Below are positions 28,919-61,300 of a stretch of DNA of 64,000 bases, piece after piece; positions within the stretch are counted from its first letter, which is position 1; the number at the start of each line of letters is the position of its first letter. This DNA comes from Chara braunii. Lineage: Eukaryota > Plantae > Charophyceae. Location: the NCBI GenBank assembly GCA_003427395.1, contig BFEA01000025.1:3071036-3135035 (forward strand), read 5' to 3'. Under the pieces are notes generated by a model that did no database searches, was not told the DNA's origin, and saw only the letters and a program-made list of their open reading frames with translations. The translations under genes and the position numbers were made by a program.

Positions 28919-31900
28919 ACAATACCACCGAATGCATTTGGGTTCAATTTCTGAATCCCTCAATTATGGCTACCCATGGTTGTTTTTTTGCTACCTATGC
29001 CACTCACGTACTAGGTGCCCCAAGCTGGCCCCATGTCTTTTCCCCTGTGTGCTTTTACTAGTACCGTCTTCAATCGAATAGAACGCCCGGTCAATACCGC
29101 CGTATTGGGTGCAACTTTCTGTCCAGATACGACAATAATTACCGGCTTTCTATTCGGGTGAAGACGGTAGTTAGTAACTTTCTCTACCTCCACGTCCCAC
29201 CCTTCACCACCTCCACTTCCCACCCTTTACCACCTCCACCTCCTACCTTTCACCTCCTCTCCTTCACTACAATTTTTTACAATCACCAATTTGTCCACAA
29301 TGTTTAGCTTTGCAACCTCTCCTTGTGCCTTTTTGTAACCTCCAATGGCTGCTACATCTTTTTTGTTCAAATTTCAAAACCTTTTAAGAAAAGAGTTAAA
29401 AAAGGCGGTCTTGTTCCTCCGGGCTCACGCGATCAGCTATCTATACGTCTCAGAGCTCATCACGCGATCAGCTATCTATAGTTGTGGGAGCTCACGAGAT
29501 CAGCTATATATAGGTCATGGAATGTGAAGGATGGCATATTTGTTTGGCAGTAGAGAAGCAACTGGATAACGACGGAAACCACGCTTGAGGCTTGATGGGG
29601 TTGTTTGGCCTAAAAGCACCCCTTTCGCAGTCTCATTGTTGTTGGGAGGGGCGGTGTGGGGGTGGGGTTTGGGCGGGGTGGGGGGGGAGGTGCAGGGGAG
29701 CTGTGGTGAGTCCAAGCAGAGAACATAAGCTACCAGCATTCCCATAGGATTGCTCTCCCCCCCCACCTTTTGTTTGTGTTTAAGAGGGGTGTGTTTTGTT
29801 AGTCAAAGTGTCGGGTCAGGTGGAGNNNNNNNNNNNNNNNNNNNNNNNNNNNNNNNNNNNNNNNNAACGCCATGCAAACAAAACACGGTATTGCTTATAT
29901 TCAATCAACTTTAAGTAACACTATAATTACCATAACAGATTCTTTTGGAGATACCAAATCTTGGTCCTCTTCTGGTTCAGTGGGATTTAAAGGATCTCGT
30001 CGTTCAACCAATTATGCTGCTCAAGCTACTGCTGAGAATGTAGCGCGTGCTGCTATTCCATTAGGAATTAAGTCAGTTGAAGTGAGAATCAAAGGTTTAG
30101 GTTATGGAAAGCCTTCGGCCTTACGTGGTTTACAATTAGGAGGTCTTATTATAACCAAGATTAGCGATGTAACTCCAACGCCACTAACAACCACTTGTGT
30201 TTCAATTTCTTCAGGTCTGNGTTTCATAGCTTTTTATGAGGTTGCACTGGGAGCCAGTGCTTGTTATATCAAATTCGCACCATGGATTTTGTCAGAAATG
30301 TTTGATGCTTCTTGGGGTTTTCTGTTTGATACTCTGACTGTGGTTATCAAATTCGCAGCATGGATTTTGTCAGAAATGTTTGATGCTTCTTGGGGTTTTC
30401 TGTTTGATACTCTGACTGTGTATATAACGTGCGTGTTTTTGGTAATCTAAGAGCTCGTGTCTTTCTCTGAATTTCAAAAGATTTGATAACGATCGCTAAT
30501 TTTTCAGTCATTTGTTCAAGTGTGTTTTTGATCGAGAGCTTATCTGTTCTGCCGAACGAAGAAAAACGCCTTAGAGTTGGAAGTTCCAAATTCATTGGTC
30601 AATCAGCAGGCTCGCCATAGTTTGATCGAAGACGAAACTTCGTAGTAATAAAATAAATACGCGCAGCTAACTAAATGCCATAAAGGCTGCGCGTACCAAG
30701 TTCACCCAGGCCAATTTGGCATGTGGTTTACCCGCTTGATCACAAAATCCAGATCTACTCAGGTTTTTTATTATATCAGAGATAGGTGCTTCCATTGTAA
30801 TATTGGTTTTCGTTCGGTCAGGAAAGAGACAGCGTTTTCCTATGTATTGCGTTGAATAAGAGCACACATACCAGGGCTCGAAGAGCGGGAACCAGGCCAC
30901 GAAGTGGCAACAGCACCTGAAGTGCAATCTGCATTCTCGTCCAACCTGACAGTTGGAATCCCATTTCGGGATGAGAGCATTTGGTGGAACCGGTGAACCA
31001 TTCAGGTCGAATGGGACAGAGGGCTCGTAGTACAATCTCGATTGAAAAGCAAGTTGTTGTTATTTATGCGGCTGTCAAAGGTTATTTAGATCAAATTCAG
31101 ATTTCTCAATTTCTTAAATATGAACAAGAGTTGTTGAAATCAATTGATCCAAGTTTGCTTTCTGCTATTGCACAACAAAAAATAATCACTGAACAAATCG
31201 ATAGTCAACTGGCTAACTTTTGTCAAAAATTTACTCAGAGTTTCTTAGCAACTCACTCGGGTTAATTCACCATTTTTCTATATCTTTGTGACTGTTTTGG
31301 GTGGGGTAATTGAGAAGCTGGCTCACTATGAAGAAAGGGCTATCATTAGTTTGTTAGGTGCTGACCTCTGTGTGTGTGTGTGTGTGTGATCATACGGCGT
31401 GTAGGTGCTGGATGTAGATCTGAATTGGCGGATGCATAAAGTGTCAGATGGGCAGCGGAGGCGTGTGCAGATTTGTATGGGCTTGCTCAGACCCTTCAAG
31501 GTGAGGAAGTGAAGCGCCACCCACAATTGGCATGGGCAAATTCTGTGTGACTTGTGTTCCCACTGGCAGTAACATCTTCCATCGAATGTATCCTGACTGC
31601 AAGACCATATGCGTGCAACCAGTTTGCATATACATTTGTCTAGTGTCGCATGCACCGTATTTGGTACTTGTAAAGATTCTACTTGCACAATTGAAGAGCT
31701 ACTTGCCTTCCGGCGTAGAGAACAACAATCCGCGTTCTACTGTCTTCCCCTGAGTACAACGCTCGGTCGTTATAGCCGTATTTGTGTCAGCTTTCAGTCT
31801 ACATACAGCTGTGATGACCGGGGGATTCTGTTCGGGGACATACATGTTGGTTGTATATTGCCCTCTCAAGCGCTGATAAATTTGCCCTTTCTTTCTTCCT

Positions 31901-32465
31901 TTCTTTCGTTCTTTCCTTTTTTATATTTGCCCTTTCGACCTTTGGCTCGCTGAGTCAGTGTGTTGGGACATAGATGTTGGTTGTATGTTGCCCTCTCCAG
32001 GGCTGATAAATTTTCCCTTTCTTTCTTTCTTTCGACCTTTCTTTCAACCTTTCTTTCTTTCGACCTTTCTTTCTTTCGACCTTTCTTTCTTTCTTTCGAC
32101 CTTTCTTTCTTTCGACCTTTCTTTCTTTCTTTCGACCTTTCTTTCTTTCTTTCTTTCGACCTTTCTTTCTTTCTTTCTTTCGAACTTTCTTTCTTTCTTT
32201 CTTTCGACCTTTCTTTCTTTCTTTCTTTCGACCTTTCGACCTTTCTTTCGACCTTTCGACCTTTCTTTCGACCTTTCGACCTTTCTTTCTTTCGACCTTT
32301 CAACCTTTCTTTCTTTCAACCTTTCTTTCTTTTGACCTTTCTTTCTTTCAACCTTTCTTTCGACCTTTCTTTCGACCTTTCTTTCGACCTTTCGACCTTT
32401 CGACCTTTCTTTCTTTCTTTCTTTTTTTCTTTCTTTTTTTCTTTTTTTCTTTCTTTTTTTTCTTT

Positions 32466-32517
<52 letters not shown>

Positions 32518-32590
32518 TCCTTCTTTCTTTCTTTCGACCTTTCGACCTTTCTTTCGACCCTTCTTTCGACCTTTCGACCTTCCTTCCTTC

Positions 32591-32625
<35 letters not shown>

Positions 32626-34253
32626 TCGACCTTTGGCTCGCAGAGCAGTTCTCTGTGACAAAAAATATACACGACTTCATTAGCTCCCTGCAGTCGTGCA
32701 GCCGGCAGGTTTCGTGTGGCAGTGGTCAGGGCCGTCACTATATGGCCATGCTGTGCCTTCAGTGCCAGTGGAGGCTCTGGAGTGTGTTTTCTGGCTGTAG
32801 CAGACCGTTCTTTGTTTTCTGGGGGCTTTGCTGGAATTTTGATGGGGTGCGAGTATAGTCTGTCGAGTCTTCCGCCTGCTGTGAGTGGGTTATAGTCTGC
32901 TTTGATTTGTTGTCATTCATACCCTTAACGGCAGGGATTGGTGGACCACCTGAGAACTGGGGTTAGATCACCAGTACGTGTTCCAGCTATTTTGTTACAA
33001 AGCGGTCGTTAACCCGCCATATATGAGGGGGCTCAGTCTACCGGACAAGAAGGGCCGGTGTCGCCAGGCAAATCGTGCATCACGCCGGTTCGGCGGGAAT
33101 TGGGGCGCAACAAATATCCTTGTCCGGGAAAAGAGGCTCGGACGGACTGTTGGTCTGTTGGTTTAAAACCGCCAGTACACGGCCCCAACCTTGCTGAAAA
33201 GAAAACTCGTCATCACCCATCCAAAAAAATCGGCGCCGGCGCGCCGTCGATAACAGAAACCGGCGGCCGGCGTCGCGTTTCGTCCCTCTGACACGGCCTC
33301 GCGGCCAATGTGAGGCATGTACCGGTGGTTTAATCTGGTTTAATCTGGATGATCGCGTACGGTATCATCCGACGAAACAGTCTGTGACAGCCCGCCGTAT
33401 CTTGTCCTTGACTCACTTTCTGGCCGATGCATGGTTCACTGATGAAACCGTTACGTGTCGGGTGTCGGTCTGCTGCGATCTGACGCTCTTGTCATAGGCA
33501 TGTAGGCACAGCCTGCTGTGTATGGCTCTAGTTTGGTTGGCAGGGTTGCAGGGTACAAGCTAAGGCAGTCAACATGTGATTGAAAGCTATACACCTGGTC
33601 CGTGTAATCTGTTCCATGGATTGGCGTCACGTCCAAATGTTCATGATGGCTGAGAAGCTGGCTTTGCTGGTGCTGTATGTGGACATCGGCCGCAGCACAG
33701 ACCTAAGAGCCTGAGGACCTCGAACTGTGCATTTGGTAACTTAACTTTTTAAAGGTTTTTAAAACTTTGAACTTTTTTTTTTTTTTTTGGCTTATTCTTT
33801 TTGGCCCCTTCTTCTTAAAGGGTGACGGCCTTGAGATATCATCGTCGAACTGATCCACCCTAGGTAATTCAGAATTGTAGTGTAGTTCACTCATCTGCTT
33901 CCAGTGGAGTTCGAACTCAGCACCTGGTCTGTATTTGAAATTGAACAGTACAGGGGGTGTACCAAATCTGGCCGGAAATATAGTTTGTATACATTCATTT
34001 TTAGGGTGCGTTATGTTCGGGGGAAGATGGCAGTTGGCATGTGCTTCTGGTAACTTACATAAAAAAAAAAAAGTTAAAAAAACCTTTAAAAAGTTAAGTT
34101 TCCAAATGCACAGTTCGAGGTCCGCAGGCTCTTAGGTCTGTGCTGCGGCAGAGTGAGAGGTTGGCTGTGAGATAGAACTCCTTGAGATNNNNNNNNNNNN
34201 NNNNNNNNNNNNNNNNNNNNNNNNNNNNNNNNNNNNNNNNNNNNNNNNNNNNN

Positions 34254-37353: not shown

Positions 37354-40300
37354 CGAGAGTCGAGATTATCATGCACTGACGCCGCCGCAGCATTACAGAG
37401 TGCCAACATAGCAGCAGGAGCCTGGTAGCACTGCAATGAGGGAATGCGATTCCACGGCTGCACAACCTTTGAGCGACTGCACATGAAGAGCAGCTACGCG
37501 CTAAATGGATGCTGCCATTGCGAAAGTCTAGCTGTCCCTTTCCCCCACTGCACTCCAAACAGGCGCTCACAGCCACTAGTGTCTCGAGATCGGGTGGAGC
37601 TGTGTTGTCTTTGCTACCATCCCTTTTCTGTTGAAGTCTTAAAAATCCTTTTGATGCTTGCCAGTGAAAAGCTACCGAAATTCTTCTCTTCCCCCCCCCN
37701 CCCCCCTCCCCCCCCCCTCCTCCCCCCGAATGGATGGGGCATCAGCTAAGTCACTTAAGTGTTGTGTCAAAAAAGTAAAACAGGATAAGTTTAGGGTGTG
37801 GTTGGTTGAAGCATCTGTCGAGGATATGGGGGAGTCGGCATAATGAGAATTTGAAAGTGAGCTCAGAAAAAATCGGGGGATTTTTGGGAACAAACCTGGT
37901 TGGGTGAAGCAAATCTGGAGTCTCTAGAGTCTACACTTTGTTTATCTAGATTCGAGAATCTATCTAGATTCGTTTTTTTCAAAGGAAAAAAAAAAGAAAG
38001 AAAGAAAAAAAAAGAGAGGGAGAGGGACCGACTATAGCAGTCGTAATGGCATGACGATGACTAATTGATGTTTTCTTGTGGCTGTGGAACCTGCATCTCC
38101 CTGAGCACCGTCTTTCAGGCTTACGTTGCAGATGGCAGGCTGAAGCTGGCAAAGCCCAGGTCAGAAATAGCAGAACTGAAGCATATGTCTCTGATGGTAA
38201 GCAAGCACATTCCTTCTCATTCCTGTCTGTACATTGATGGTAGTATGGACTCTGTGCACTTTCTGCTCGATATATAGGTACATCATATATCGTCAATTAG
38301 ATATATATTATATATATAGGGTTCAGCCTCCTGATGAGTCGGTGAAACTCCGACGAAACAGTTTGTCACAGCCCCTCCTTTGTTGTCCTCTTCTCCCTCC
38401 CTCCCTCTCTGCCTAAGGTTTACCGGGCAGCTCTGTGTTATGAACCTGGTTGCTTGTTGTCAGAAGACTAACACTCACTCACATAGACTTCCATGCATGC
38501 CCATACATACACAGAAGGAAGGTGAGATGATAGGAGTATCACACCACACAGAGAGAATGAAACACAGCAGAAGCCATGTCCCGCCGATATGATATGACAG
38601 AATACCCTGAAAGTGCAATTCGCTCCACGGAGTCCCCACAACCAGTCACAAAGGAAAGTAGAGTAGATCACATCCAGGAAACAATGACGCAAAGATCGTC
38701 AACACACAGTATTGCATGGGTCCTGGGGACCATCTCACGCAAGTGTGTACATGCCATGCATCGTACTCCCACACACAATGAACAGTAGTCTGACAATAGA
38801 CAAANNNNNNNNNNNNNNNNNNNNNNNNNNNNNNNNNNNNNNNNNNNNNNNNNNNNNNNNNNNNNNNNNNNNNNNNNNNNNNNNNNNNNNNNNNNNNNNN
38901 NNNNNNNNNNNNNNNNNNNNNNNNNNNNNNNNNNNNNNNNNNNNNNNNNNNNNNNNNNNNNNNNNNNNNNNNNNNNNNNNNNNNNNNNNNNNNNNNNNNN
39001 NNNNNNNNNNNNNNNNNNNNNNNNNNNNNNNNNNNNNNNNNNNNNNNNNNNNNNNNNNNNNNNNNNNNNNNNNNNNNNNNNNNNNNNNNNNNNNNNNNNN
39101 NNNNNNNNNNNNNNNNNNNNNNNNNNNNNNNNNNNNNNNNNNNNNNNNNNNNNNNNNNNNNNNNNNNNNNNNNNNNNNNNNNNNNNNNNNNNNNTCAGCG
39201 CACAAGTGCACCAGCACTTCCACGCATTGCAGCCAGTGGAGATCTGGCGAGGAATGAGGCAGGCAGCTCTTTTAATAGTGCTGGCCACTCCTCGCTGGGT
39301 CTGCATTGGCTCAATTCAGCCTCTCCCTTTGTCCCAGACCCTGCATTGCATGTGTCCCGGTACAGTCCCAATGAGATTCAACTGCTGCTGAGGCACTTCG
39401 GCCTGGATTTGGACTTGAAAGTCTGGATCTGGACTGACCACTTGACTTAGACCAGAACTGGGACTGTACACAGACACACCCTTACTCGAACAGACATGAC
39501 ATACACATCTCCTGGTGAACAGGTAAGTCTTTTGACAATGCCCTTTGCCTTAGATTTAGATGTGCCTGTTGATAGAGAGCTTGACTTTTGACCTGTTTTC
39601 ACGTTTCTGAGCCCTGGCAAGATACCTTTTCACAATGCTTTACTTGTACAAGGCCCGTGCTGCTCTATTTTTACAAGGCCTGAGGCCTATATCGGGTAAA
39701 GGCCCTTTTAGTATCAACACTGTGTATTACACTCAGAGAGTCGTTTTGCCCGAATAGTCTCAGAACCATGGTGCGTTGCTCAGGAGTGAGCAGCGCTTCT
39801 TCCCAACCCCGAGTAACGGCTATCTGCCACTCCAGAACCCCTGAAACAACCAGCGGCGCCACCCAGATACTGCCTCCAGAGGGGAGCGCCACCCTGAAAC
39901 AGGCCCCTGAGGCCAAGCGCCTCTCAGAAGATGAAGAAGAAGACCAGCGCCAAAGTCTCTGATGAAAATGAAGTGCCAGAGGACTTCACTAGGGAAGATC
40001 TGCAGCAGCACCACCGTTCCTTTTTTTTTTTTTTTTTTTCCTTTCCTGACAAAGGAAATCTCTGAGGATGTAAGCTGCAGCTATGGCTGGCGCGCCACTA
40101 CCCTGAACCCTACTCCTGAGGAGGGTTCGACAGGGCACCAACTTCTGCCACTTCCAGCAGACGTCAGATAGCCCAGACCTCTGAGCAGCCCCACTTACTG
40201 CCAGAGAACAGCGAAGGACCCAGCTATGGACGACGCTTCGAGGGTCTGGCTATGTCTGTCTCTTTCTTCAACGCTGAAGCTGTCACCACTCCAGTTCACG

Positions 40301-42823
40301 CGTTGCGCCGCCGCGATCTGCAAAATGCCAATCGTCAAAAAGCCCTGAACAGACTTCCTCATTCTATTAATAGATCCACTCTAGCCTACACTCGACCAAC
40401 ACCGGACCTACTGGACCGACCGGTACCGTTTCTGTTTCGGCCTCTAGGGCCTCTCCTTACCCGGCTATAGGCTATAGGTCCAAGGTTGATGAGAAGTGTT
40501 CCACCAATTTACAGAGAATTTCATTATTGGTATATTTATTTATGAGACCTATACAAACAAAAAGAGAAGCTACGTCTGCAGAAAAGAATAGAAAACGTAG
40601 TGGACCTAAATGTAGGAAGTCTGGTTTTTACTCTTATATCAAGTTATATCATTATATGTGGTATTCATTCTTGTTTGACTCTTGGATTGAGATCTACAGA
40701 GTCTCAGCATAGGCCCTTAGGCCTGTCTGTCCACGTGGTAGCCCGGGCCTGCTATTCGCAGTTAGGGGGGACTAGAGGGAAATAGGATTAGTGGGGGTCG
40801 GTTGGTCTCTACGACTTTGCAGATATGTCCCTCACGTATTTCCCGACAGGCTGGTTTCCCGGTTAGTACACAGCAGAAACAAAATTACGAATCTGTCCTA
40901 CTATGTTACAGCCTCGCCTCGGTTCGACGGGGTGCAGGCTGCAGAATCAGCAAGTCATTGCATCTGTTTGACTATGTATAGGGTTGAGCCTCCAGATGAG
41001 TCGGCGAAACTCCCACGAAACAGTTTGGCACAGCCCCTCGTTTCTTGTCCTCTTCTCCCTCTCTGCCTACGGTTTACCGTCGGCAGCTCTGTTTGACGAT
41101 ATATACGACTACTTCGCTAACACACTGCTACGGTTTTCTCCGGTCAGGTCGAGCGGCCGTGGTCGGGGCCGTCACTACGCGGCCTTGCTGTGCCTCGAGT
41201 GCCAGCGGCGTGTCTAGAGTGTATTTTTTGGCTGTGACAGACCTTTCTTTGTTTCGTGGGTGTTTTGCTTGCTTGTGGCTTGGGATGGGGTGTGAACCGA
41301 CAGTCTGTAGAGTTTTCCATCAGGTGTGGGTGAGTGATAGTCTGCTTTGATTTTCGTCACGGGTACCTTGAGGGGCAGTGGTTGGTGGTCCCCACCACCA
41401 CCTCAGAGGGGTATTAGTTGTCGGGCAGTCGTTGATGCTTAACCACAACCGGGGTTCAGGCGGATTATCACTTACAGTGTAATCAGTCAGTTAAGGGATT
41501 CTGCAGACTGTTGAGGGTTCAGCCTCCTCCTGACGAGTGAGTCGGTGAAACTCCGATGAAACAGTTTGTCCTCTTCTTTGAAAATACTAAAATAGGAATG
41601 AAAGGTTTTCACGAGCGTTTCTTTCCTTTTTTTATCATTTGTTATGATTTTACAATCTTGAAATTTGAATACGTCAACTAAACGGCCTCGGCCCTCCGGT
41701 GAGACCAGACCCCTAAAAATGACGATGTTACATCACGCAAATTCCATACCGGTCTGCAGTTTGAAATCATGATCTTTTTTCTGACACAGTGACATGTGTG
41801 TGCCATACACACTGAGGCACATGGGCTGGGTGCAGTCTCGTTGTTGTTGTTGTTGTTTTTTTTTTTTTTTTTTTNTTTTTTTTTTTTTTTTTTCCCCAAC
41901 GAAATGCAGGAGATAGTCCGAGATACATATTGAATATAGCTGGAAACTCTGGAAACTGAGGATAGAGAGTCCCACAGTCCCTCTATCCTCCTCTTTTTTT
42001 TTTTGCGTCTGTCTCGCTTTTTTCTTTTCCCCCCTAACTTCCCTAAGTCCCTTTATTTATTTATATAGGGCCCAGTCTCCAAGGCAAAAATACAAGTGAG
42101 AGTTATGGTTGGCGTCGGCTGCAATTTCAGGGGCCTCTAGGCCTCCAGCCTCACTTCGGCAGGCAGAGACTGTCCCCCCCCTCGCTATTCTGAAGTGCAT
42201 TCTTTTTCAGTCCTGTCTGACTAGTGACTACCCTATTTACCCGAATAGAATGGAAGGTGATTGTCTCCGTATGGAGGCTGGAAGTTGCCCCAAATACGCA
42301 GCTATAATTAATTTACAACGTACGTTCTATTCGGGGGAAGGAGGTAGAAGCTCTTGCCTTATACATGAAGTGTTTTGTGCACTGTCCCCATCCTTTGTTG
42401 CAAGGTCTTGTCGGTCTGACGTCAGTGATGGTCTTGTGGTGGCAGGGTGCCCAGGGCAAGCTCTCTCCCCCCCCCCCCCCAATGATCAGGTCAAGCATTT
42501 TGCTGCTTTGTATCATTCTTTCTGAAAAACTTTGCCGCAGAATGTTTTCGTAACGTTCGATGCATGTGTGCTTGTTTTATCTTTTCTTTTCTTTTCTTTT
42601 CTTTTCTTTTCTTTTCTTTTCTTTTCTTTTGTTTGGGCAGAGAACCATAGAGTTATGGCTGCGCGCAGATGTTGAGCAGCAGCGAAAGGCCAGGAAGGAG
42701 CGGCGAGCGAGAGGCGAAAAGGGAAACCCGTTCGAGTCGGTCGTCGTTCAGAACAATGGGTGGGCGGCAGGCCGCATGTCGTCAACATTGAAAGGCAGTA
42801 GTAATTCCGTCCTGAGGCTCTGA
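17202..42823 (+). CDS. ABCI20: ABC transporter I family member 20-like soluble ABC ATPase (CAF16-like), 7 exons, ~334 aa
   Basis: Exons 17202-17442, 27813-27946, 28677-28796, 31405-31500, 35964-36116, 38119-38196 and 42641-42823 join in frame (1005 nt). They give Walker A GANGAGKTT, signature VSDGQRRRV, Walker B LLLDE, H-loop YATH and C-terminal NNGWAAGR, colinear with Arabidopsis ABCI20 as I recall it. Confidence 0.95.
19379..19581. repeat. ~32-bp repeats (one dispersed plus three tandem)
   Basis: CCGAATAGAACGCGGGGCCTTGACTGCGGATC. Confidence 0.82.
21383..21493. repeat. 21-bp minisatellite
   Basis: TAGGTGATTGATTAGGCCTAA. Confidence 0.85.
21926..22118. repeat. 33-bp minisatellite, about 6 copies
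   Basis: TTCCCGCCAAATAATAATTTCAACAGGTAAATG in tandem. Confidence 0.92.
23000..26068 (-). mobile_element. 5'-truncated, degenerate L1/Tx1-type LINE ORF2 (reverse transcriptase) in ABCI20 intron 1
   Basis: [31 protein letters not shown] and GGLGI motifs across frameshifted ORFs; AT-rich insert at about 23990-24290; 3' limit approximate. Confidence 0.88.
26641..26775. repeat. 27-bp minisatellite, 5 copies
   Basis: TAGTCTGGAAGAGTGTACACAAGTCTR. Confidence 0.92.
26903..26975 (+). mobile_element. tRNA-derived SINE-like head (copies at about 26288 +, 34333 +, 22332 -, 33898 -)
   Basis: A box TAGCTCAATTGGTA and B box GAGTTCGAATCC with a shared GAAATACAGACCC linker; no full cloverleaf. Confidence 0.65.
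27100..27810. repeat. degenerate GCT/ATG-rich repeat directly upstream of ABCI20 exon 2
   Basis: GCTATGGCTG / GCTGATGCTG units. Confidence 0.85.
27813..27946 (+). CDS. ABCI20: ABCI20 exon 2
   Basis: tgcAG|(G)[16 protein letters not shown]...YLGGE|GTGGGT; the phase matches exon 1. Confidence 0.93.
28677..28796 (+). CDS. ABCI20: ABCI20 exon 3 (GC donor)
   Basis: gcAG|[13 protein letters not shown]...RRRRLIQ|GCAAGA. Confidence 0.92.
29872..30183 (+). pseudogene. rps11: mitochondrial ribosomal protein S11 fragment (NUMT), lacks the C-terminal HNGCRP.. tail
   Basis: [23 protein letters not shown]...[14 protein letters not shown]...KGLGYGK...DVTPTP. Confidence 0.9.
30184..30420 (+). pseudogene. 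nad5: mitochondrial nad5 N-terminal fragment with a 78-bp tandem duplication (NUMT)
   Basis: [46 protein letters not shown]; the last 26 codons are repeated. Confidence 0.9.
30419..30511 (-). pseudogene. rps10: mitochondrial rps10 5' fragment (NUMT)
   Basis: [13 protein letters not shown]...[10 protein letters not shown] resembles the plant mitochondrial S10 N-terminus (..IVIKSF..LP....LYTVLRSPH). Confidence 0.75.
30690..30815 (-). pseudogene. group II intron maturase (domain X) fragment (NUMT)
   Basis: [35 protein letters not shown] resembles the domain X 'API..I...L...GFC...G.P' motif. Confidence 0.65.
30816..31033 (+). other. probable organellar group II intron fragment
   Basis: Non-coding GC-richer segment (..GAGAGCATTTGGTGGAACCGGTGAACC..) resembling plant mitochondrial intron sequence; lies between two NUMT pieces. 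Confidence 0.4.
31035..31265 (+). pseudogene. atp1: mitochondrial atp1 3' end fragment (NUMT)
   Basis: [19 protein letters not shown]...[13 protein letters not shown]-stop matches the ATP synthase alpha C-terminus. Confidence 0.9.
31405..31500 (+). CDS. ABCI20: ABCI20 exon 4
   Basis: gtAG|[32 protein letters not shown]|GTGAGG (not in the ORF track; translated by hand). Confidence 0.95.
32017..32633. repeat. compound (TTTC)n / TTTCGACC microsatellite
   Basis: Seen directly in the sequence. Confidence 0.9.
32640..33420 (+). mobile_element. diverged subfamily copy of the hammerhead element, interrupted
   Basis: 32640-32960 aligns with 41085-41410 (e.g. GGGCCGTCACTA..GCTGTGCCT, ATAGTCTGCTTTGATTT); 33368-33420 is CCGACGAAACAGTCTGTGACAGCCC.. 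Confidence 0.6.
35007..35856. repeat. 21-bp minisatellite array
   Basis: TTGTACGGTTGCCCTTCRACT units, degenerate. Confidence 0.9.
35964..36116 (+). CDS. ABCI20: ABCI20 exon 5
   Basis: gcAG|[12 protein letters not shown]...[16 protein letters not shown]|GTGCGT. Confidence 0.95.
38119..38196 (+). CDS. ABCI20: ABCI20 exon 6
   Basis: ttcAG|[26 protein letters not shown]|GTAAGC. Confidence 0.92.
38318..38437 (+). ncRNA. hammerhead repeat fragment equivalent to the 3' cleavage product (intact CTGATGA / stem II / GAAA core)
   Basis: (TA)n-AGGGTTCAGCCTC-CTGATGA-GTCGG-TGAAACT-CCGAC-GAAA-CAGTTTGT; the upstream stem III strand is missing. Confidence 0.75.
40980..41570 (+). mobile_element. hammerhead-bounded non-coding repeat (retrozyme-like monomer of ~534 nt plus the start of the next unit)
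   Basis: The same ribozyme motif occurs at both ends (40980-41030 and 41503-41570); internal sequence is shared with 44129-44496 and 32640-32960. Confidence 0.75.
41503..41569 (+). ncRNA. type III hammerhead ribozyme, degenerate copy
   Basis: GCAGACTG-TT-GAGG-loop-CCTC-CTGACGA-(GTGA insert)-GTCGG-TGAAACT-CCGAT-GAAA-CAGTTTGT. Confidence 0.7.
42641..42823 (+). CDS. ABCI20: ABCI20 exon 7 (terminal)
   Basis: (CTTTT)n tract...gcAG|RTIELWLR...[26 protein letters not shown]. Confidence 0.92.
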   Translation, partial: RTIELWLRADVEQQRKARKERRARGEKGNPFESVVVQNNGWAAGRMSSTLKGSSNSVLRL

Positions 42824-43682: not shown

Positions 43683-43766
43683 GTCCTCCTTCGGGACATC
43701 CGTTTAAATTGGAACGATACAGAGAAGATTGATTAGCATGGCCCCTGCGCAAGGATGACACACATA
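43683..43766 (+). pseudogene. U6: U6 snRNA copy, 5' portion (interrupted)
   Basis: GTCC..TTCGGGACATCCG..AAATTGGAACGATACAGAGAAGATT(GATT)AGCATGGCCCCTGCGCAAGGATGACACACATA; ACAGAGA box and ISL present; 4-nt GATT duplication; no clear upstream USE or TATA. Confidence 0.9.
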
Positions 43767-43987
43767 TCCTGATGAATCGGTGAAACTCCGACGAAACAGT
43801 TTGTCACAGCCCCCTTGATTGTTGTCCTCCTCTCCCTCTCTGCCTACGGTTTACCGGGCAGCTGACTATATATATATTGTCAAATAGAACTGCCCGGTAA
43901 ACCGTAGGCAGAGAGGGAGAGGAGGACAACAATCAAGGGGGCTGTGACAAACTGTTTCGGCGGAGTTTCACCGATTCATCAGGATAT
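43764..43987. repeat. 98-bp-arm fold-back inverted repeat of the hammerhead element
   Basis: 43764-43861 is the reverse complement of 43890-43987 with one mismatch; 28-nt TA-rich spacer. Confidence 0.92.
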
Positions 43988-44128
43988 ATACATGTACAAG
44001 AATATTGTGATGAAATCTTAATTACAGATGACCATACAGAAGTAGGAAACATGATTGCTAGGATTGAGCCTGCTATATACTGTTTGTGACGATATATTAT
44101 ATAAATATATATAATGTTATATATATAT

Positions 44129-44627
44129 ATGAGTCGGTGAAACTCCGACGAAACAGTTTGTCACAGCCCCTCGTTTGTTGTCCTCTTCTCTCTCTCTGCC
44201 TACGGTTTACCGGGCAGTTCTGTTTGTGACGATATATATTATAAATATATATTAGTTTTCCATCTGGTGTGGGTGAGTGATAGTCTGCTTTGATTTCCGT
44301 CACAGGTACCTTGAGGGAAGTGGTTGGTGGTCCCCACCACCTCAGAGGGGTATCAGTTGTCGGGCAGTGGTTGATGGTTAACCACAACCGGGGTTAAGGT
44401 GGATTATTACTTAGAGTGTAATCAGTATGGGATTCTGCAGACTGTTGAGGGTTCAGCCTCCTCATGGGTCGGTGAAACTCCGATGAAAAAGTTTGTTATC
44501 GGCAAACAGAACTGCCCGGTAAACTATAGGTAGAGAGGGAGAAGAGGACAAGAAACGAGGGGCTGTGACAAACTGTTTTGTCGGAGTTTCACGGACTCAT
44601 CAGGAGGCTGAACCCTGAACAGTTTGC
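44129..44627. mobile_element. internally deleted hammerhead-element monomer, next ribozyme copy (44437-44496, +) and inverted copy (44503-44627, -)
   Basis: Direct alignment to 40980-41570; cores are mutated (CTCATGG on +; GAAA to AAAA on -). Confidence 0.78.
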
Positions 44628-44768
44628 GGTGAATCTGGACGTGTTTGTGGAGACGTGCAGTTCAGGAAACTCAACACCATTTCTGCACATCTCCGCAAAA
44701 GCGTCCAGATTCAGGCGTTGAGGTAGCTCAACGCTGCTATTGGGACTTGGCCCCAGAGGGCAGTCGGT

Positions 44769-44810
44769 AAGGATGACACGCATAATTTGAGAAATGGTTC
44801 AGTTTCTTTT
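44769..44810 (+). pseudogene. U6: U6 snRNA copy, 3' portion
   Basis: AAGGATGACACGCATAATTTGAGAAATGGTTCAGTTTCTTTT matches the plant U6 3' end. Confidence 0.85.
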
Positions 44811-57782: not shown

Positions 57783-60700
57783 CATGTGTTTGAACCATAC
57801 TTGCGGCGCACCGGCATTATGCGCAGCGCGCTGTGCGCAGACCCGAGGTGCGCACGTGCGCCGCGCGTCTGGGTGCATGGTGCGCTGCGCACATGCCTGG
57901 TGCGCTGGGGAATGCGCATCTGCAGCCCGCATATGCGCCAGGTGCGCACATCTTTTTTTGTTTTTGTTTTTGTATGTTGCATTGGAGATCACACACACAC
58001 ACACACACACTTTTTTTTTCTTTTTCTTTAATGTTGCATTGGAGAGCACACACAACACACACACACACACACTCTGGAGGATTGATGCTGCCGCTGCGCA
58101 CAACAACTTTACAGATTAACCCACAAAATGTCCTCGGGGCGGCGATTAGAACTTAGTACTTACCTTGGGGTTGGTTGAGCAATGTGCGTGTAATCAGAGA
58201 GGAAGCATGTTCGTTTTTCAAACACAAGCAGAAACAAGAAACATCACAAGATTCAAGACAAAAGAAAGTGTTAGACTCGGTATCCCGAAAGCCGTAGCTT
58301 GCGAAGTTCGTAGTCTTACAAGCACGGAAGCAAGCAAGCAAGCACACACTACCCTCAAAATACTCATTCGTGATTCTGCGAAAAGTAAGGGCTACTCGTC
58401 CTGCTCCCTCGAGTGTTCCTCCCCGTGAGACTCCGCATACGACGTGACCTTCTCCGACTCATCCCCGTTCGGCTCTCCACTATCATCCGATCTTTGGGAC
58501 AGTTCCTCCTACTCAATCTCCTGCGGCGCACTGTCGTCCGACGATGACAATGACGATGATGATGAAGAAGATTTATTTTTCCGCTTACGACACAAATTTT
58601 CTTCATTGTCTTCGATCACCTCACAGTTGTTCTCCTCCTTCGCAGGCCTTGCTGCCTTGGCTACTGCAGCTTTTGCTGCCTCTCCACGTGCTGCTAATGC
58701 AGTTGTTCTCCTCCTTCGCAGGCCTTGCTGCCTTGGCTCCTTCTTCGTCGGCGAAAGACGAGGCCGCCTTTTTTTTTTTGTTGTGGAACATCCCCCTCCC
58801 CAACATTCCTCTTTCCTTTCTCAACCTGCAGTTTTTCAACAACGTCCGCTGCTGTTGCCTTCTTTTTGCGTCGCCCGCGACCCGACACCACCTCCCTCCC
58901 CTGCACCCAATCGTCGCTTTGACGCGCCTTCAAGGCACGGGCACGACCCTCCAAGGTATACAAAAACCCGAGATCGGGTTCTTCAAGACCCAACTTCCTG
59001 CGCAACTCCTGCATTCGGTGCGTTCCAGGCTTGCGTGGTATGTTCTCTCCAGTGCACCGAGCACGACAATGTCGTCCTCATCATCAGCAAAGTTCTCCTC
59101 CTCGTTGCTCTTCAACCATGTACGCGCCAGTGGGGCATCATTGCATTCTTTGTTGCGGACCTCCGTTGCAGCAACATCACCGGCTGTCCCTTCCCTAACT
59201 TTCGCGGCCCATTGGTCGTACCACTCCTCCACTTCTGTTATCGCCAACATCATCATCCTTCTGCGGAATGTGTATGTCTTCCCCGTTCCCTTGCTCTCTT
59301 CGCGTCGACAATTGGATATTCCAATTGTTATAGCTTACTCAATCTCTCCGGTAAGAGTTTCGTGTGGCGTTGGCTGTAAATGAGGTGGTGTAAGCTCCAG
59401 TTTCGCTCATATCCAGCCGAAGAGCTCGTCTGGCCAAGAAGTTTGGTTGCCTGCAGTTGGAGGAGGTCCAGGGACCCCCCGAACGCCTCCCACCATAGCG
59501 CCAGAGTTTTCAAACTCGCCTGCTCCCTTGCATTCTGTGTCCCCAAAGTGCCCAATCCCTGCACCCACATGTCCACCTGTTTGCTGATTTCTCGCTACAA
59601 CAACTCCGGCGGCGCCCAAAAATAAAGCCAGATGTTGAACCCCTCGCAAATCTGCATGTCTCTCAACGTGTGCGTCATATACTCGGGATCAAGGAAGATG
59701 GCCACGCAATGCAGCTCTGATGTCATGAAGGCCCACCGGTCCATCAAAATCTTCTCCACGTTCGCCTTCTCAGCGTCCAACAGGCCGTCGAGGGTGCGCA
59801 TAGTAGCCACAACCGCGTCCATGCCAAAATAGACTTTGCTCATAGTTGCTCCTGGACCGTCCACCAAACGAAGGAGCTTGACAACAGGCTTCATCACCGC
59901 CAGAGTCATGTCCACATCCTTCCAGAATCCATTTGTGTCCATGATGATGTGGGTGACAACGTTGAATGGAGCCACCTGCTCCCCCCTCACCAACTTCTCT
60001 ACCCACGCCACGTTGCAGACACAATGCTCCAATAGATTCCTCCCCGTGCTAAGCGACAGAAGCATCTCAAAGTTCGTCGTGAATCTAGTGACCGTCGAGC
60101 GTTTGAGTTGCGCATCCGCGATCCTGTTGTACATAGCACGAACCTTGTCGACGTTGGTGAAAAACTTGCCAACTTTATTGTCGTTGTCGACGACCGTTTT
60201 CAAGCAATCTATGTAGGTGTACATGTCCTCCAGGGCCAAATCCAAGGCATGGGTTGTGCAACCCACACTAAAGATTCCAAGGTACTTAGCATCCGCCATC
60301 TCCCCCGCTTTAGCGCAAACCTTCGCATTGTCCATCACAACGCCGACAATGGACGCCGCACTGATCTCCTGGATCACCCCGTCCAACATCTTGAAGTACG
60401 TTGTGGAATCATTTTCCCTCCCCTCCATGCAGACAGACTTCGAAAACACTGTTCCGGCCGGGAAAGAGACCATGACATTCAGATGCGGTTTGTTCCTCCA
60501 GTCCGACCACCCGGCCATTTGGAGCATGCATCCTGTTCTCTCCCACTTCTTCACTAGTGACTGCGTGTCTTCTCCCACCAATTTAAATTGTCCGTCCAAC
60601 TGTTTGGTCCTCATCTTGTCCCTCTTGCTAGACCACCAACTAGGATGACACTTCTTCACAACATCGAGGAACTCGAGAAAGCAGAAGTTCTCCACCATGT

Positions 60701-61300
60701 TGAATGGCTGATTCGTGCAAATCAGCCACCGATCCATCTTCCGACCCGCGTGCTCGTTTCGGGTGATGATAGTGTCTGCCTCCTCGAGCAAAGTTTGCCT
60801 CACCGACCGTCCACACCACTTCCCGGGGCAGGAGCGAAGATGTTTGCAGATCTTGCAGGCGAGGTCGTCTCGCCATCACTTGGTCTGCGTGTTGGTGATG
60901 ATGGAGGCACGAAACTGTTGGAAGACGGTCCTGTGCTCCGACCACCACTTCCCCCAATTCCACCTACGAGATGAGTGGCCTGGTGCTTCCCCAGCCTGAT
61001 GCCCTTGATTCTCGTGAGCCTTTCCTCCGCGGTCAATGCCCGAGTGACAAGCTCAATATTGCACTTCGTCAAGAAGTGCCTCTTCCGTGCCGACGAACCG
61101 GGTCTCACAATAGTTGCAGAGCCAGTGCCTCAACCCCTTGCCGGGGTCCTTGCCGCGAGGACCTTCATCAGTGAAGTGCCTCACGAACGATTGTATGATT
61201 TGCTTCGCCAGTGTCGCCGACATCTTCACCTGCACACACACAATCCACAAACAGCCAAGGCGTCGACCCCTCTTCAACACTCTTCAAAGAAATAGCGTCC
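57783..61300 (-). mobile_element. hAT DNA transposon relic (BED finger, DUF659/RNase H-like DDE, hATC dimerisation), frameshifted
   Basis: WLCNYC..HFLTKC, (D>A)GWSD, MDNA, CTTHALDLALED, TRF and SSSAGYERNWS in ORF pieces 58930-61222; TGCGCA-rich subterminal region 57800-57950; the other end may lie in the N gap. Confidence 0.88.

Follow-up and report, generated by a model that had tools for sequence, protein, structure and literature searches.

Probable relic of a partially tandem, non-coding and non-autonomous retroelement bearing a type III hammerhead ribozyme in Chara braunii

Retrozymes, as we understand the two described forms, combine a hammerhead ribozyme with the retrotransposition machinery of other elements: those of flowering plants have long terminal repeats (LTRs), carry a type III hammerhead and depend on Gypsy elements (PMC4918200), and those of animals are non-LTR, carry a type I hammerhead and probably depend on Penelope-like elements (PMC7229834). 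Penelope-like elements leave a characteristic signature: their copies are often 5′-truncated, lie in microsatellites, form partial tandems and come with short terminal tails and inverted 5′-truncated partners. The Chlamys-type elements of the alga Chara braunii are reported to carry canonical 3′ hammerheads; short non-coding derivatives of Chlamys elements are not described in that work (PMC8557442). We analyzed a 64,000-nucleotide (nt) stretch of the C. braunii genome (assembly GCA_003427395.1, contig BFEA01000025.1, positions 3,071,036 to 3,135,035, forward strand; hereafter ‘the window’), in which two hammerhead modules lie in a repeat at 40980–41575. We consider it probable that this locus is a partial tandem, now decayed, from a retroelement family that bears a type III hammerhead, encodes no protein and depends on another element for its mobility.

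The original prediction for this locus, made from the letters of the window, had described a monomer of ~534 nt that begins with AGGGTT at 40980 and runs to 41512, where the motif restarts. The positions and the spacing were borne out by the sequence and by a repeat search, which found the two hammerhead modules in direct orientation, 534 nt apart. The sequence at 40980 is AGGGTTGAGCCTCCAGATGAGTCGGCGAAACTCCCACGAAACAGTTTGG; that from 41503 onward is GCAGACTGTT/GAGGGTTCAGCC..GAAACAGTTTGT, where GCAGACTGTT ends at 41512 and is followed by GAGGGTTCAGCC. The locus can be divided into the following parts:

40963–40979, plus strand: ‘tail’, a 3′-end fragment of the element (TCTGTTTGAC plus TATGTAT), 17–18 nt, directly upstream of the S copy
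40980–41105, plus strand: S, or part 1, the hammerhead from 1 nt past the cut plus ~75 nt with a CT-rich tract
41106–41310, plus strand: ‘middle’, the 5′ region of the long element L, starting CGACTACTTCGC
41311–41502, plus strand: ‘part 2’, non-coding and structured, in front of the hammerhead
41503–41570, plus strand: full-length type III hammerhead with a predicted cut at U41512/G41513, its core interrupted by CCT and CGAG insertions
41571–41575, plus strand: right end of the repeat; the copy breaks off within part 1, just past a deletion of 20 nt (GTTTGT/CCTCTTCT)

The borders of the repeat are sharp, at 40978 and 41575, as judged from the depth of DNA sequences aligned to it at an identity of at least 86%. 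All DNA and RNA runs that contain the stretch bear one and the same species label, and the DNA runs are from 2018. In one DNA run the depth was 10^5 to 10^6 inside 40978–41575, and it was 345,934 in the bin at 41550–41575 versus 0–1.4 from 41576 on. The left flank (40900–40977) is moderately repeated in DNA, with a summed depth of ~190–1,760 versus 0–1.4 on the right flank. One contig from a run marked ‘RNA?’ is identical to 40900–41031, so that low-level read-through of the 40980 locus itself is possible.

The stretch at 40980–41575 comprises 1.11 units, its left repeated end spans 125 nt and its right one ~60 nt, and no locus in the window exceeds 1.1 units. The S copy ends in CTGTTTGAC-GATATATA, and a direct repeat (D4) relates 40963–40980 to 41088–41105 with 89% identity at a spacing of 125. 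The middle is contiguous with part 1 and part 2 in a diverged copy at 32617–32955 and absent from a copy at 44127–44499; part 2 is 88% identical to 44254–44446 and forms its own hairpin in predicted folds. As read from the sequence, the order of the locus would thus be a tail, an S copy and then an L copy that stops early, at 41575. The 534-nt distance between hammerheads is the element length seen across a head-to-tail joint, and the 534-nt ‘monomer’ is most plausibly a linear element of ~532 nt in circularly permuted form.

The absence of a credible open reading frame (ORF), primer-binding site (PBS) or polypurine tract (PPT) that had been noted for the monomer was confirmed: even the trimerized monomer contains no ATG-initiated ORF of more than 73 amino acids, the best match in the unit to a tRNA-Met PBS has 5 mismatches in 12 positions (a background level), and the plus strand of the unit has no purine run of 9 or more. 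No 4-bp target-site duplication (TSD) was visible by eye at 40963/41575.

The sequence evidence argues that L is a linear element of ~532 nt. Its 3′ end is fixed (..CTGTTTGTGAC followed by (TA)n, with CTGTTTG(T)GAC and then (TA)n closing a tail of ~75 nt), as is its 5′ end (CGACT(A)CTTCGC), and its order is the 5′ end, the middle with an inverted hammerhead relic, part 2, the hammerhead and the ~75-nt tail. The RNA data, all of them poly(A)-selected (oligo-dT) reads or assembled contigs, included 5,492 aligned reads from ~6% of one run. At 41105, 504 RNA reads and sets of 16 and 24 contigs depart from the reference into heterogeneous TA-rich sequence; most family members end there, and the depth dips at 41108–41133 in all runs. 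The linker that joins part 1 to the next segment differs in both sequence and length among three copies, being GATATATA at 41105, AAAAAATATACA in an old relative (at 32660) and GATATATATTATAAATATATATTA at 44232, where part 2 rather than the middle comes next. Because of the ends at 41105, the variable linkers and the tail before 40980, we interpret this junction as the joint of two linear copies and not as the interior of a circle.

The 5′ boundaries of the copies bear on the same question. The copies at 38318 and 40980 share their first base, which lies 1 nt past the predicted cut, and a 14-nt piece at 44061 (AGGATTGAGCC, 12/14 matching) may mark a third copy that starts at the cut; such starts fit run-off on a cleaved linear template. 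Other copies start inside the hammerhead (43767 and 44131). A short 3′-end piece also precedes L in the old relative (from 32640 on, diverged to 74% identity) and in a consensus of 14 DNA contigs upstream of 41125, and the head-to-tail arrangement is therefore a habit of the family rather than a one-off.

A search of the whole window at the Rfam gathering thresholds returned a U6 small nuclear RNA (snRNA) gene as its sole match. For RF00008 (Rfam Hammerhead_3) that threshold is 48.5 bits, and the hammerhead matches in the window all fall below it: 41505–41567 (28.7 bits; E 1.7e-4 in a local search), 44570–44625 on the minus strand (32.1 bits), 38316–38364 (26.0 bits) and 44439–44494 (18.5 bits). 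All four sub-threshold scores are those of decayed or truncated copies. With up to 3 mismatches allowed, six occurrences of the 29-nt hammerhead core were counted in the window, against 0.00 expected by chance. When the 5′ strand of helix III from 41503–41513 was combined with the intact-core copy at 38318–38371, the minimum free energy (MFE) structure of the composite was a canonical three-way type III hammerhead with a helix III of 8–10 bp, a helix I of 4 bp (GAGG/CCUC) with a 6-nt loop, and a helix II of 5 bp (GUCGG/CCGAC) with a 7-nt loop, in which CUGAUGA and GAAA are unpaired. The RF00008 alignments and this fold agree on the type III layout, with helix III open and three helices around the core. 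A type I reading was rejected on inspection: helix I would not pair, and an 8-bp helix III and the Rfam type III model fit the sequence.

Neither ribozyme at 40980–41575 looks active from its sequence, and the invariant core CUGANGA...GAAA is absent from both. The left module (40980) lacks the cleavage site, the 5′ strand of helix III and G1.1; its conserved box reads CAGAUGA at 40993 (U4 changed to A), and its helix II has a C-C mismatch (CCCAC). Joining the 3′ end of the proposed monomer to its 5′ end was expected to regenerate a complete hammerhead. It does not: the joint would read GUU-AGGG in place of GUU-GAGGG, so that G1.1 would be missing, and the CAGAUGA and CCCAC lesions would persist. 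In the right module (41529) 5 nt stand where the model has 1 within CUGA-N-GA (CUGA-CGAGU-GA), and its MFE fold is not hammerhead-shaped. The proposal that tandem transcripts of 40980–41575 are cut to monomers is likewise not supported, since the stretch has only one cleavage site (41512/41513), served by a ribozyme with an insertion in its core, and cannot release a monomer. Elsewhere in the window, the copy at 44439–44494 has core lesions (CUCAUGG and GAAAA), and that at 44570–44625 (minus strand) has G12 changed to A and mismatches in helices I and II.

The core is canonical in the copy at 38331 and in the read consensus. Nearly all family reads, from DNA and RNA, carry the canonical bases where the 40980 copy deviates: the change of 40994 from A to T, which restores CUGAUGA, is found in 532 of 535 RNA reads, and the other restored sites are 40986 (G to C), 41005 (C to T), 41014 (C to G), 41028 (G to T) and 41557 (T to C). 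At 41534 a minority share of the family reads skip the 4 extra nucleotides. Dozens more near-fixed differences, among which C to T is the commonest, lie along the unit, and their spread fits an old copy. The family consensus is a canonical type III hammerhead, and 40980–41575 is a decayed copy of it.

The family is abundant and transcribed. A total of 9,723 DNA contigs align to 40978–41575, and the depth over the middle and part 2 reaches 0.2–0.98 million in DNA. In every run, DNA or RNA, the depth peaks at 41004–41081, and relative to DNA the RNA signal is 10–40 times higher on the 125-nt module that holds this peak than over 41108–41500. Transcripts of the family, whose detection had been suggested as a check, are present in RNA reads and are mostly sense: if the library is taken to be stranded, sense orientation prevails by ~4:1. 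The same check had called for reads that span or end at GUU/GAGG. Spanning molecules were found: in 9 RNA reads and one contig, part 2 is followed by a canonical hammerhead and then by part 1 (joint from 41528 to 40995), a junction that is also encoded in DNA. Ends were not: the poly(A) RNA reads show no pile-up at 41512/41513 and no position with an excess of molecule ends.

The remaining copies in the window, together with the gene that some of them interrupt, are as follows:

32640–33445, plus strand: old longer relative, 74% identical over 41149–41391
38318–38443, plus strand: independent S copy in (TA)n, core with 0 mismatches, beginning AGGG, 1 nt past the predicted cut
43683–43766, plus strand: 5′ part of a U6 snRNA gene (RF00026, 74.3 bits), with the 3′ part at 44766–44808 (22.2 bits)
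43767–43984: tail-to-tail fold-back pair of S copies (43767–43874 plus, 43984–43870 minus)
44061–44499, plus strand: head-to-tail stack of three fragments with TA-rich linkers
44495–44627, minus strand: inverted S-type copy with a full hammerhead (RF00008, 32.1 bits)

The old relative comprises the last ~15–18 nt of part 1, an A/T linker, the middle, part 2 and a degenerate hammerhead, and runs on into part 1. Directly upstream of it lies a microsatellite of ~750 nt, (CTTT)n/(CGACCTTT)n, at 31880–32630. A hammerhead cluster of ~1 kb splits the U6 gene, and AAGGATGACAC(A/G)CATA(A)T is duplicated on both sides of it, which constitutes a target duplication of 16–17 bp. Given the split and the duplication, a role for U6 as an RNA polymerase III promoter of the element was ruled out. 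Within the cluster, the two members of the fold-back pair are 5′-truncated at the identical point, CCTGATGA, and share the central (TA)n. The stack consists of a mini copy at 44061–44125, an S copy at 44127–44239 that is truncated at GAGTCGG (44131), and a 5′-truncated L copy with its hammerhead at 44254–44499 (junction 44446/44447, core CUCAUGG/GAAAA). A second head-to-tail junction had been placed at 44446, and it is indeed there (GCAGACTGTT/GAGGG at 44437–44458, with GTT ending at 44446). The period of 335 nt at 44131/44466 is incidental, arising from a 5′-truncated copy, and is not a second unit size.

The L copy at 44254–44499 abuts the inverted copy tail-to-tail at 44496/44497, and the inverted copy keeps 10 nt upstream of its cut (44627). 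The sequence upstream of this inverted hammerhead (44628–44765) is not part 2 but a different segment of ~138 nt, which has its own inverted repeat (GAATCTGGACG..CGTCCAGATTC). With two different upstream sequences, the hammerhead and part 1 therefore form a module common to at least two element types.

We also scanned metagenomes with the hammerhead core. A 35-nt core gave 0 matches, and a 29-nt core matched two contigs from the Joint Genome Institute (JGI), L001:8195–8223 (minus strand) and L002:3461–3489 (plus strand), in each of which a type III hammerhead lies between genes, shortly before an ORF. These are identical to the Chara family over the core, helix II and loop 2 (29 nt) and unrelated in the remainder, and the likeness is probably convergence on a common helix II. 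No relative of the whole element was found in the scans with either core.

Inspection of the middle revealed an ‘anti-hammerhead’ at 41230–41312 (also present at 32800–32890), an inverted, degenerate copy of the hammerhead module that has lost CUGAUGA. Its identity is supported by alignment of its reverse complement with the hammerhead copies and by an inverted repeat (I1) in which 41004–41022 and 41250–41268 are 89% complementary, and it is retained in the relative that has diverged to 74% identity. MFE folds show it paired with the hammerhead in a hairpin that is long but imperfect (fold z-scores of −3.7 and −3.3). Judged from these predicted structures, the anti-hammerhead probably keeps the ribozyme inactive in the full-length RNA, an attenuation that would explain the persistence of L copies with intact hammerheads.

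The variable TA linkers, the inverted 5′-truncated partners and the U6 target duplication fit retrotransposition of a self-cleaved linear RNA by a Penelope-like (Chlamys) element, and the anatomy of the insertions (a partial tandem, a terminal tail, an inverted 5′-truncated copy, a (TA)n target and 5′ truncation) corresponds to that described for such elements (PMC8557442). By this route sense RNA, which is observed at the family level, would be cleaved by the hammerhead at GUU/G. A Penelope-like (Chlamys-type) reverse transcriptase (RT) might then prime on nicked (TA)n or A/T-rich DNA at the UAUAUA end of the RNA and proceed to the 5′ end of the template. Cleaved RNA would give rise to the very abundant 125-nt S copies that start at the cut and, without the helix III strand, would be incapable of cutting again; uncleaved RNA would give rise to L copies. 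End-to-end template jumps, or reinsertion into the TA tail of an earlier copy, could then produce the head-to-tail stacks, the short tails and the inverted 5′-truncated partners. The Penelope-like partner itself is one that we infer by analogy.

Several points weigh against this account. A comparison of 20 ORFs of the window with Pfam gave no RT or endonuclease, and no autonomous Penelope-like element was found among them. Both long copies stop short of the canonical 3′ end (at 41575 and 44499), contrary to what a simple 3′-anchored model predicts, and the succession of part 1 and then the middle, seen in two diverged copies and in the DNA-contig consensus, is what a circle or a true tandem would also give. 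The starts at AGGG lack G1.1 and lie within TA repeats, leaving the boundary ambiguous by 1–2 nt, and some of the 5′ ends inside the hammerhead could reflect stalling of RT at the long hairpin rather than cleavage. An excess of read starts at the cut, finally, was not found in the poly(A) RNA reads.

The family might instead behave as a true retrozyme, in which cleavage of transcripts with two hammerheads would yield 534-nt monomers that are joined into circular RNA (circRNA), and rolling reverse transcription of the circle would produce DNA copies that are permuted or exceed one unit. We regard this as rather unlikely. The mode is known for plant and animal retrozymes (PMC4918200, PMC7229834), the two modules have the same orientation at a distance of one period, the monomer has a strong predicted structure (z −3.7), and permutations and lengths do vary, with 1.11 units at 40980–41575 and ~1.0 at 32640–33445, which starts elsewhere in the cycle. 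The 9 RNA reads and one contig that cross from part 2 through the hammerhead into part 1 would be expected as well, but DNA-encoded junctions explain them equally. A circular template does not predict that several copies begin at the cut; nor does it sit well with a TA linker between part 1 and the middle that varies in sequence and length, with the termination of most copies at 41105, or with the RNA depth, which falls 10–40-fold from the 125-nt module to the middle and part 2. Read ends do not accumulate at the cut, the 335-nt period at 44131/44466 derives from a 5′-truncated copy, and 40980–41575 has one cleavage site and two defective cores. The narrower proposal that the family makes unit-length circRNAs of 534 nt, along with shorter ones, that contain a type III hammerhead and are copied by a Penelope-like RT seems to us quite unlikely. 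If true, it would describe a non-LTR type III retrozyme that bridges plant LTR retrozymes, viroid-like RNAs and animal retrozymes, and one in which an internal anti-hammerhead hairpin turns off the ribozyme of the full-length RNA.

At the other extreme, the locus could be a chance composite, in which an S copy happened to enter the TA run at the 5′ end of an older, unrelated L, so that there would be no unit at all. No other form is as abundant as S, whose target is (TA)n, the 40963–40980 fragment and the TATATA at 41099–41105 resemble a split target around S, and stacks of independent fragments do exist at 44061–44499. This reading nevertheless appears very unlikely, because the end of part 1, an A/T linker and the middle occur in the same order in the relative diverged to 74% identity (from 32640 on) and in the 14-DNA-contig consensus upstream of 41125; a 3′-end piece before L is therefore the rule, as with the ‘tails’ and pseudo-LTRs of Penelope-like elements (PMC8557442). 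It differs from Penelope-like insertion of a linear element only in the number of events. We also considered that the hammerhead module is the terminal repeat or 3′ untranslated region of an autonomous element of the Chlamys-2_cBra type, and the stretch its deletion derivative. The Chlamys families of C. braunii have a canonical 3′ hammerhead and form pseudo-LTRs (PMC8557442), and the hammerhead and part 1 stand behind two different upstream sequences (41311–41512, and 44628–44765 on the minus strand), as expected of a shared 3′ module. No remnant of an RT, endonuclease or gag gene was found beside any of the eight copies in the window, however, in the comparison of the 20 window ORFs with Pfam; moreover, L has a recurrent non-coding 5′ end, and its middle and part 2 are so highly repeated in DNA (0.2–0.98 million) as to indicate a family in its own right. 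Such a derivation is highly improbable.

If the preferred reading, Penelope-like retrotransposition of a self-cleaved linear RNA, is correct, the combination of a type III ribozyme with Penelope-style insertion in a streptophyte alga would represent an intermediate between the two retrozyme forms, and the idea that retrozymes descend from Penelope-like elements would gain support from such an element. The family would also offer a natural test of the role of a ribozyme in a retroelement, in that the ribozyme seems to decide between a 532-nt and a 125-nt copy. The 40980–41575 locus itself, a dead copy, adds little.

The window as a whole is eukaryotic sequence, with the U6 snRNA gene, long microsatellites and few long ORFs. 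An ORF at 29872–30450 (plus strand) contains a full Ribosomal_S11 domain (E 3.6e-32) and runs into the N-terminus of NADH dehydrogenase chain 5; it looks like a piece of organelle DNA within nuclear-type sequence. A 402-amino-acid ORF at 59595–60803 (minus strand) contains a DUF659 domain (E 5.8e-30), which we take to be associated with hAT-type transposases, and is probably a remnant of a DNA transposon.

Self-cleaving ribozymes of another kind, resembling that of hepatitis delta virus (HDV), set the 5′ end of the RNA for reverse transcription in the non-LTR retrotransposons R2 and L1Tc. The HDV-like ribozyme stays whole on the retrotransposed product, whereas the type III hammerhead loses the 5′ strand of its helix III; copies made from cleaved hammerhead RNA cannot recut because that strand is lost.

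Among hammerhead-bearing elements, the retrozyme-like label that had been given to the Chara element is fair as an analogy: the element is non-coding, bears hammerheads and is found head-to-tail, as proposed, but membership fails on the tested features, on which neither described class of retrozymes fits. With plant LTR retrozymes (Cervera, Urbina & de la Peña 2016, PMC4918200) it shares a type III hammerhead, a non-coding sequence, a host from the green lineage, two direct-repeat hammerheads a few hundred nucleotides apart and a highly structured RNA. Unlike them, it has a redundancy of 60–125 nt rather than LTRs of 300–400 bp that each contain a hammerhead, and has neither a tRNA-Met PBS nor a PPT. 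Their TSD is 4 bp, in contrast to the 16–17 bp duplicated at the Chara U6 site, and the Chara copies, known from DNA and poly(A) RNA, lie in (TA)n and are accompanied by tails and by inverted partners. Metazoan non-LTR retrozymes (Cervera & de la Peña 2020, PMC7229834) resemble it in being non-autonomous and non-LTR, without a PBS or PPT, and in their head-to-tail copies, long TSDs and proposed Penelope-like partner. They carry, however, type I hammerheads in units of 170–400 nt that form long tandem arrays and produce abundant circular RNAs, whereas the Chara element is of type III, 532 nt long (period 534), and occurs in dispersed partial tandems with defined linear ends.

The Naiad/Chlamys group of Penelope-like elements (Craig et al. 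2021, PMC8557442) matches the Chara copies in its pseudo-LTR partial tandems, an inverted 5′-truncated neighbor copy, the short terminal ‘tail’, microsatellite targets, frequent 5′ truncation and a hammerhead near the 3′ end. Unlike those elements, the Chara copies have no RT, GIY-YIG or gag ORF inside or alongside them. The usual targets of Chlamys elements are (CA)n and (C)n and those of Naiads are (TA)n (PMC8557442), the latter being the sequence in which the Chara copies reside. The same clade includes Chlamys-2_cBra and an endonuclease-less (EN-less) type from Chara braunii, both reported to have canonical 3′ hammerheads (PMC8557442) and both from the same host as the element described here.

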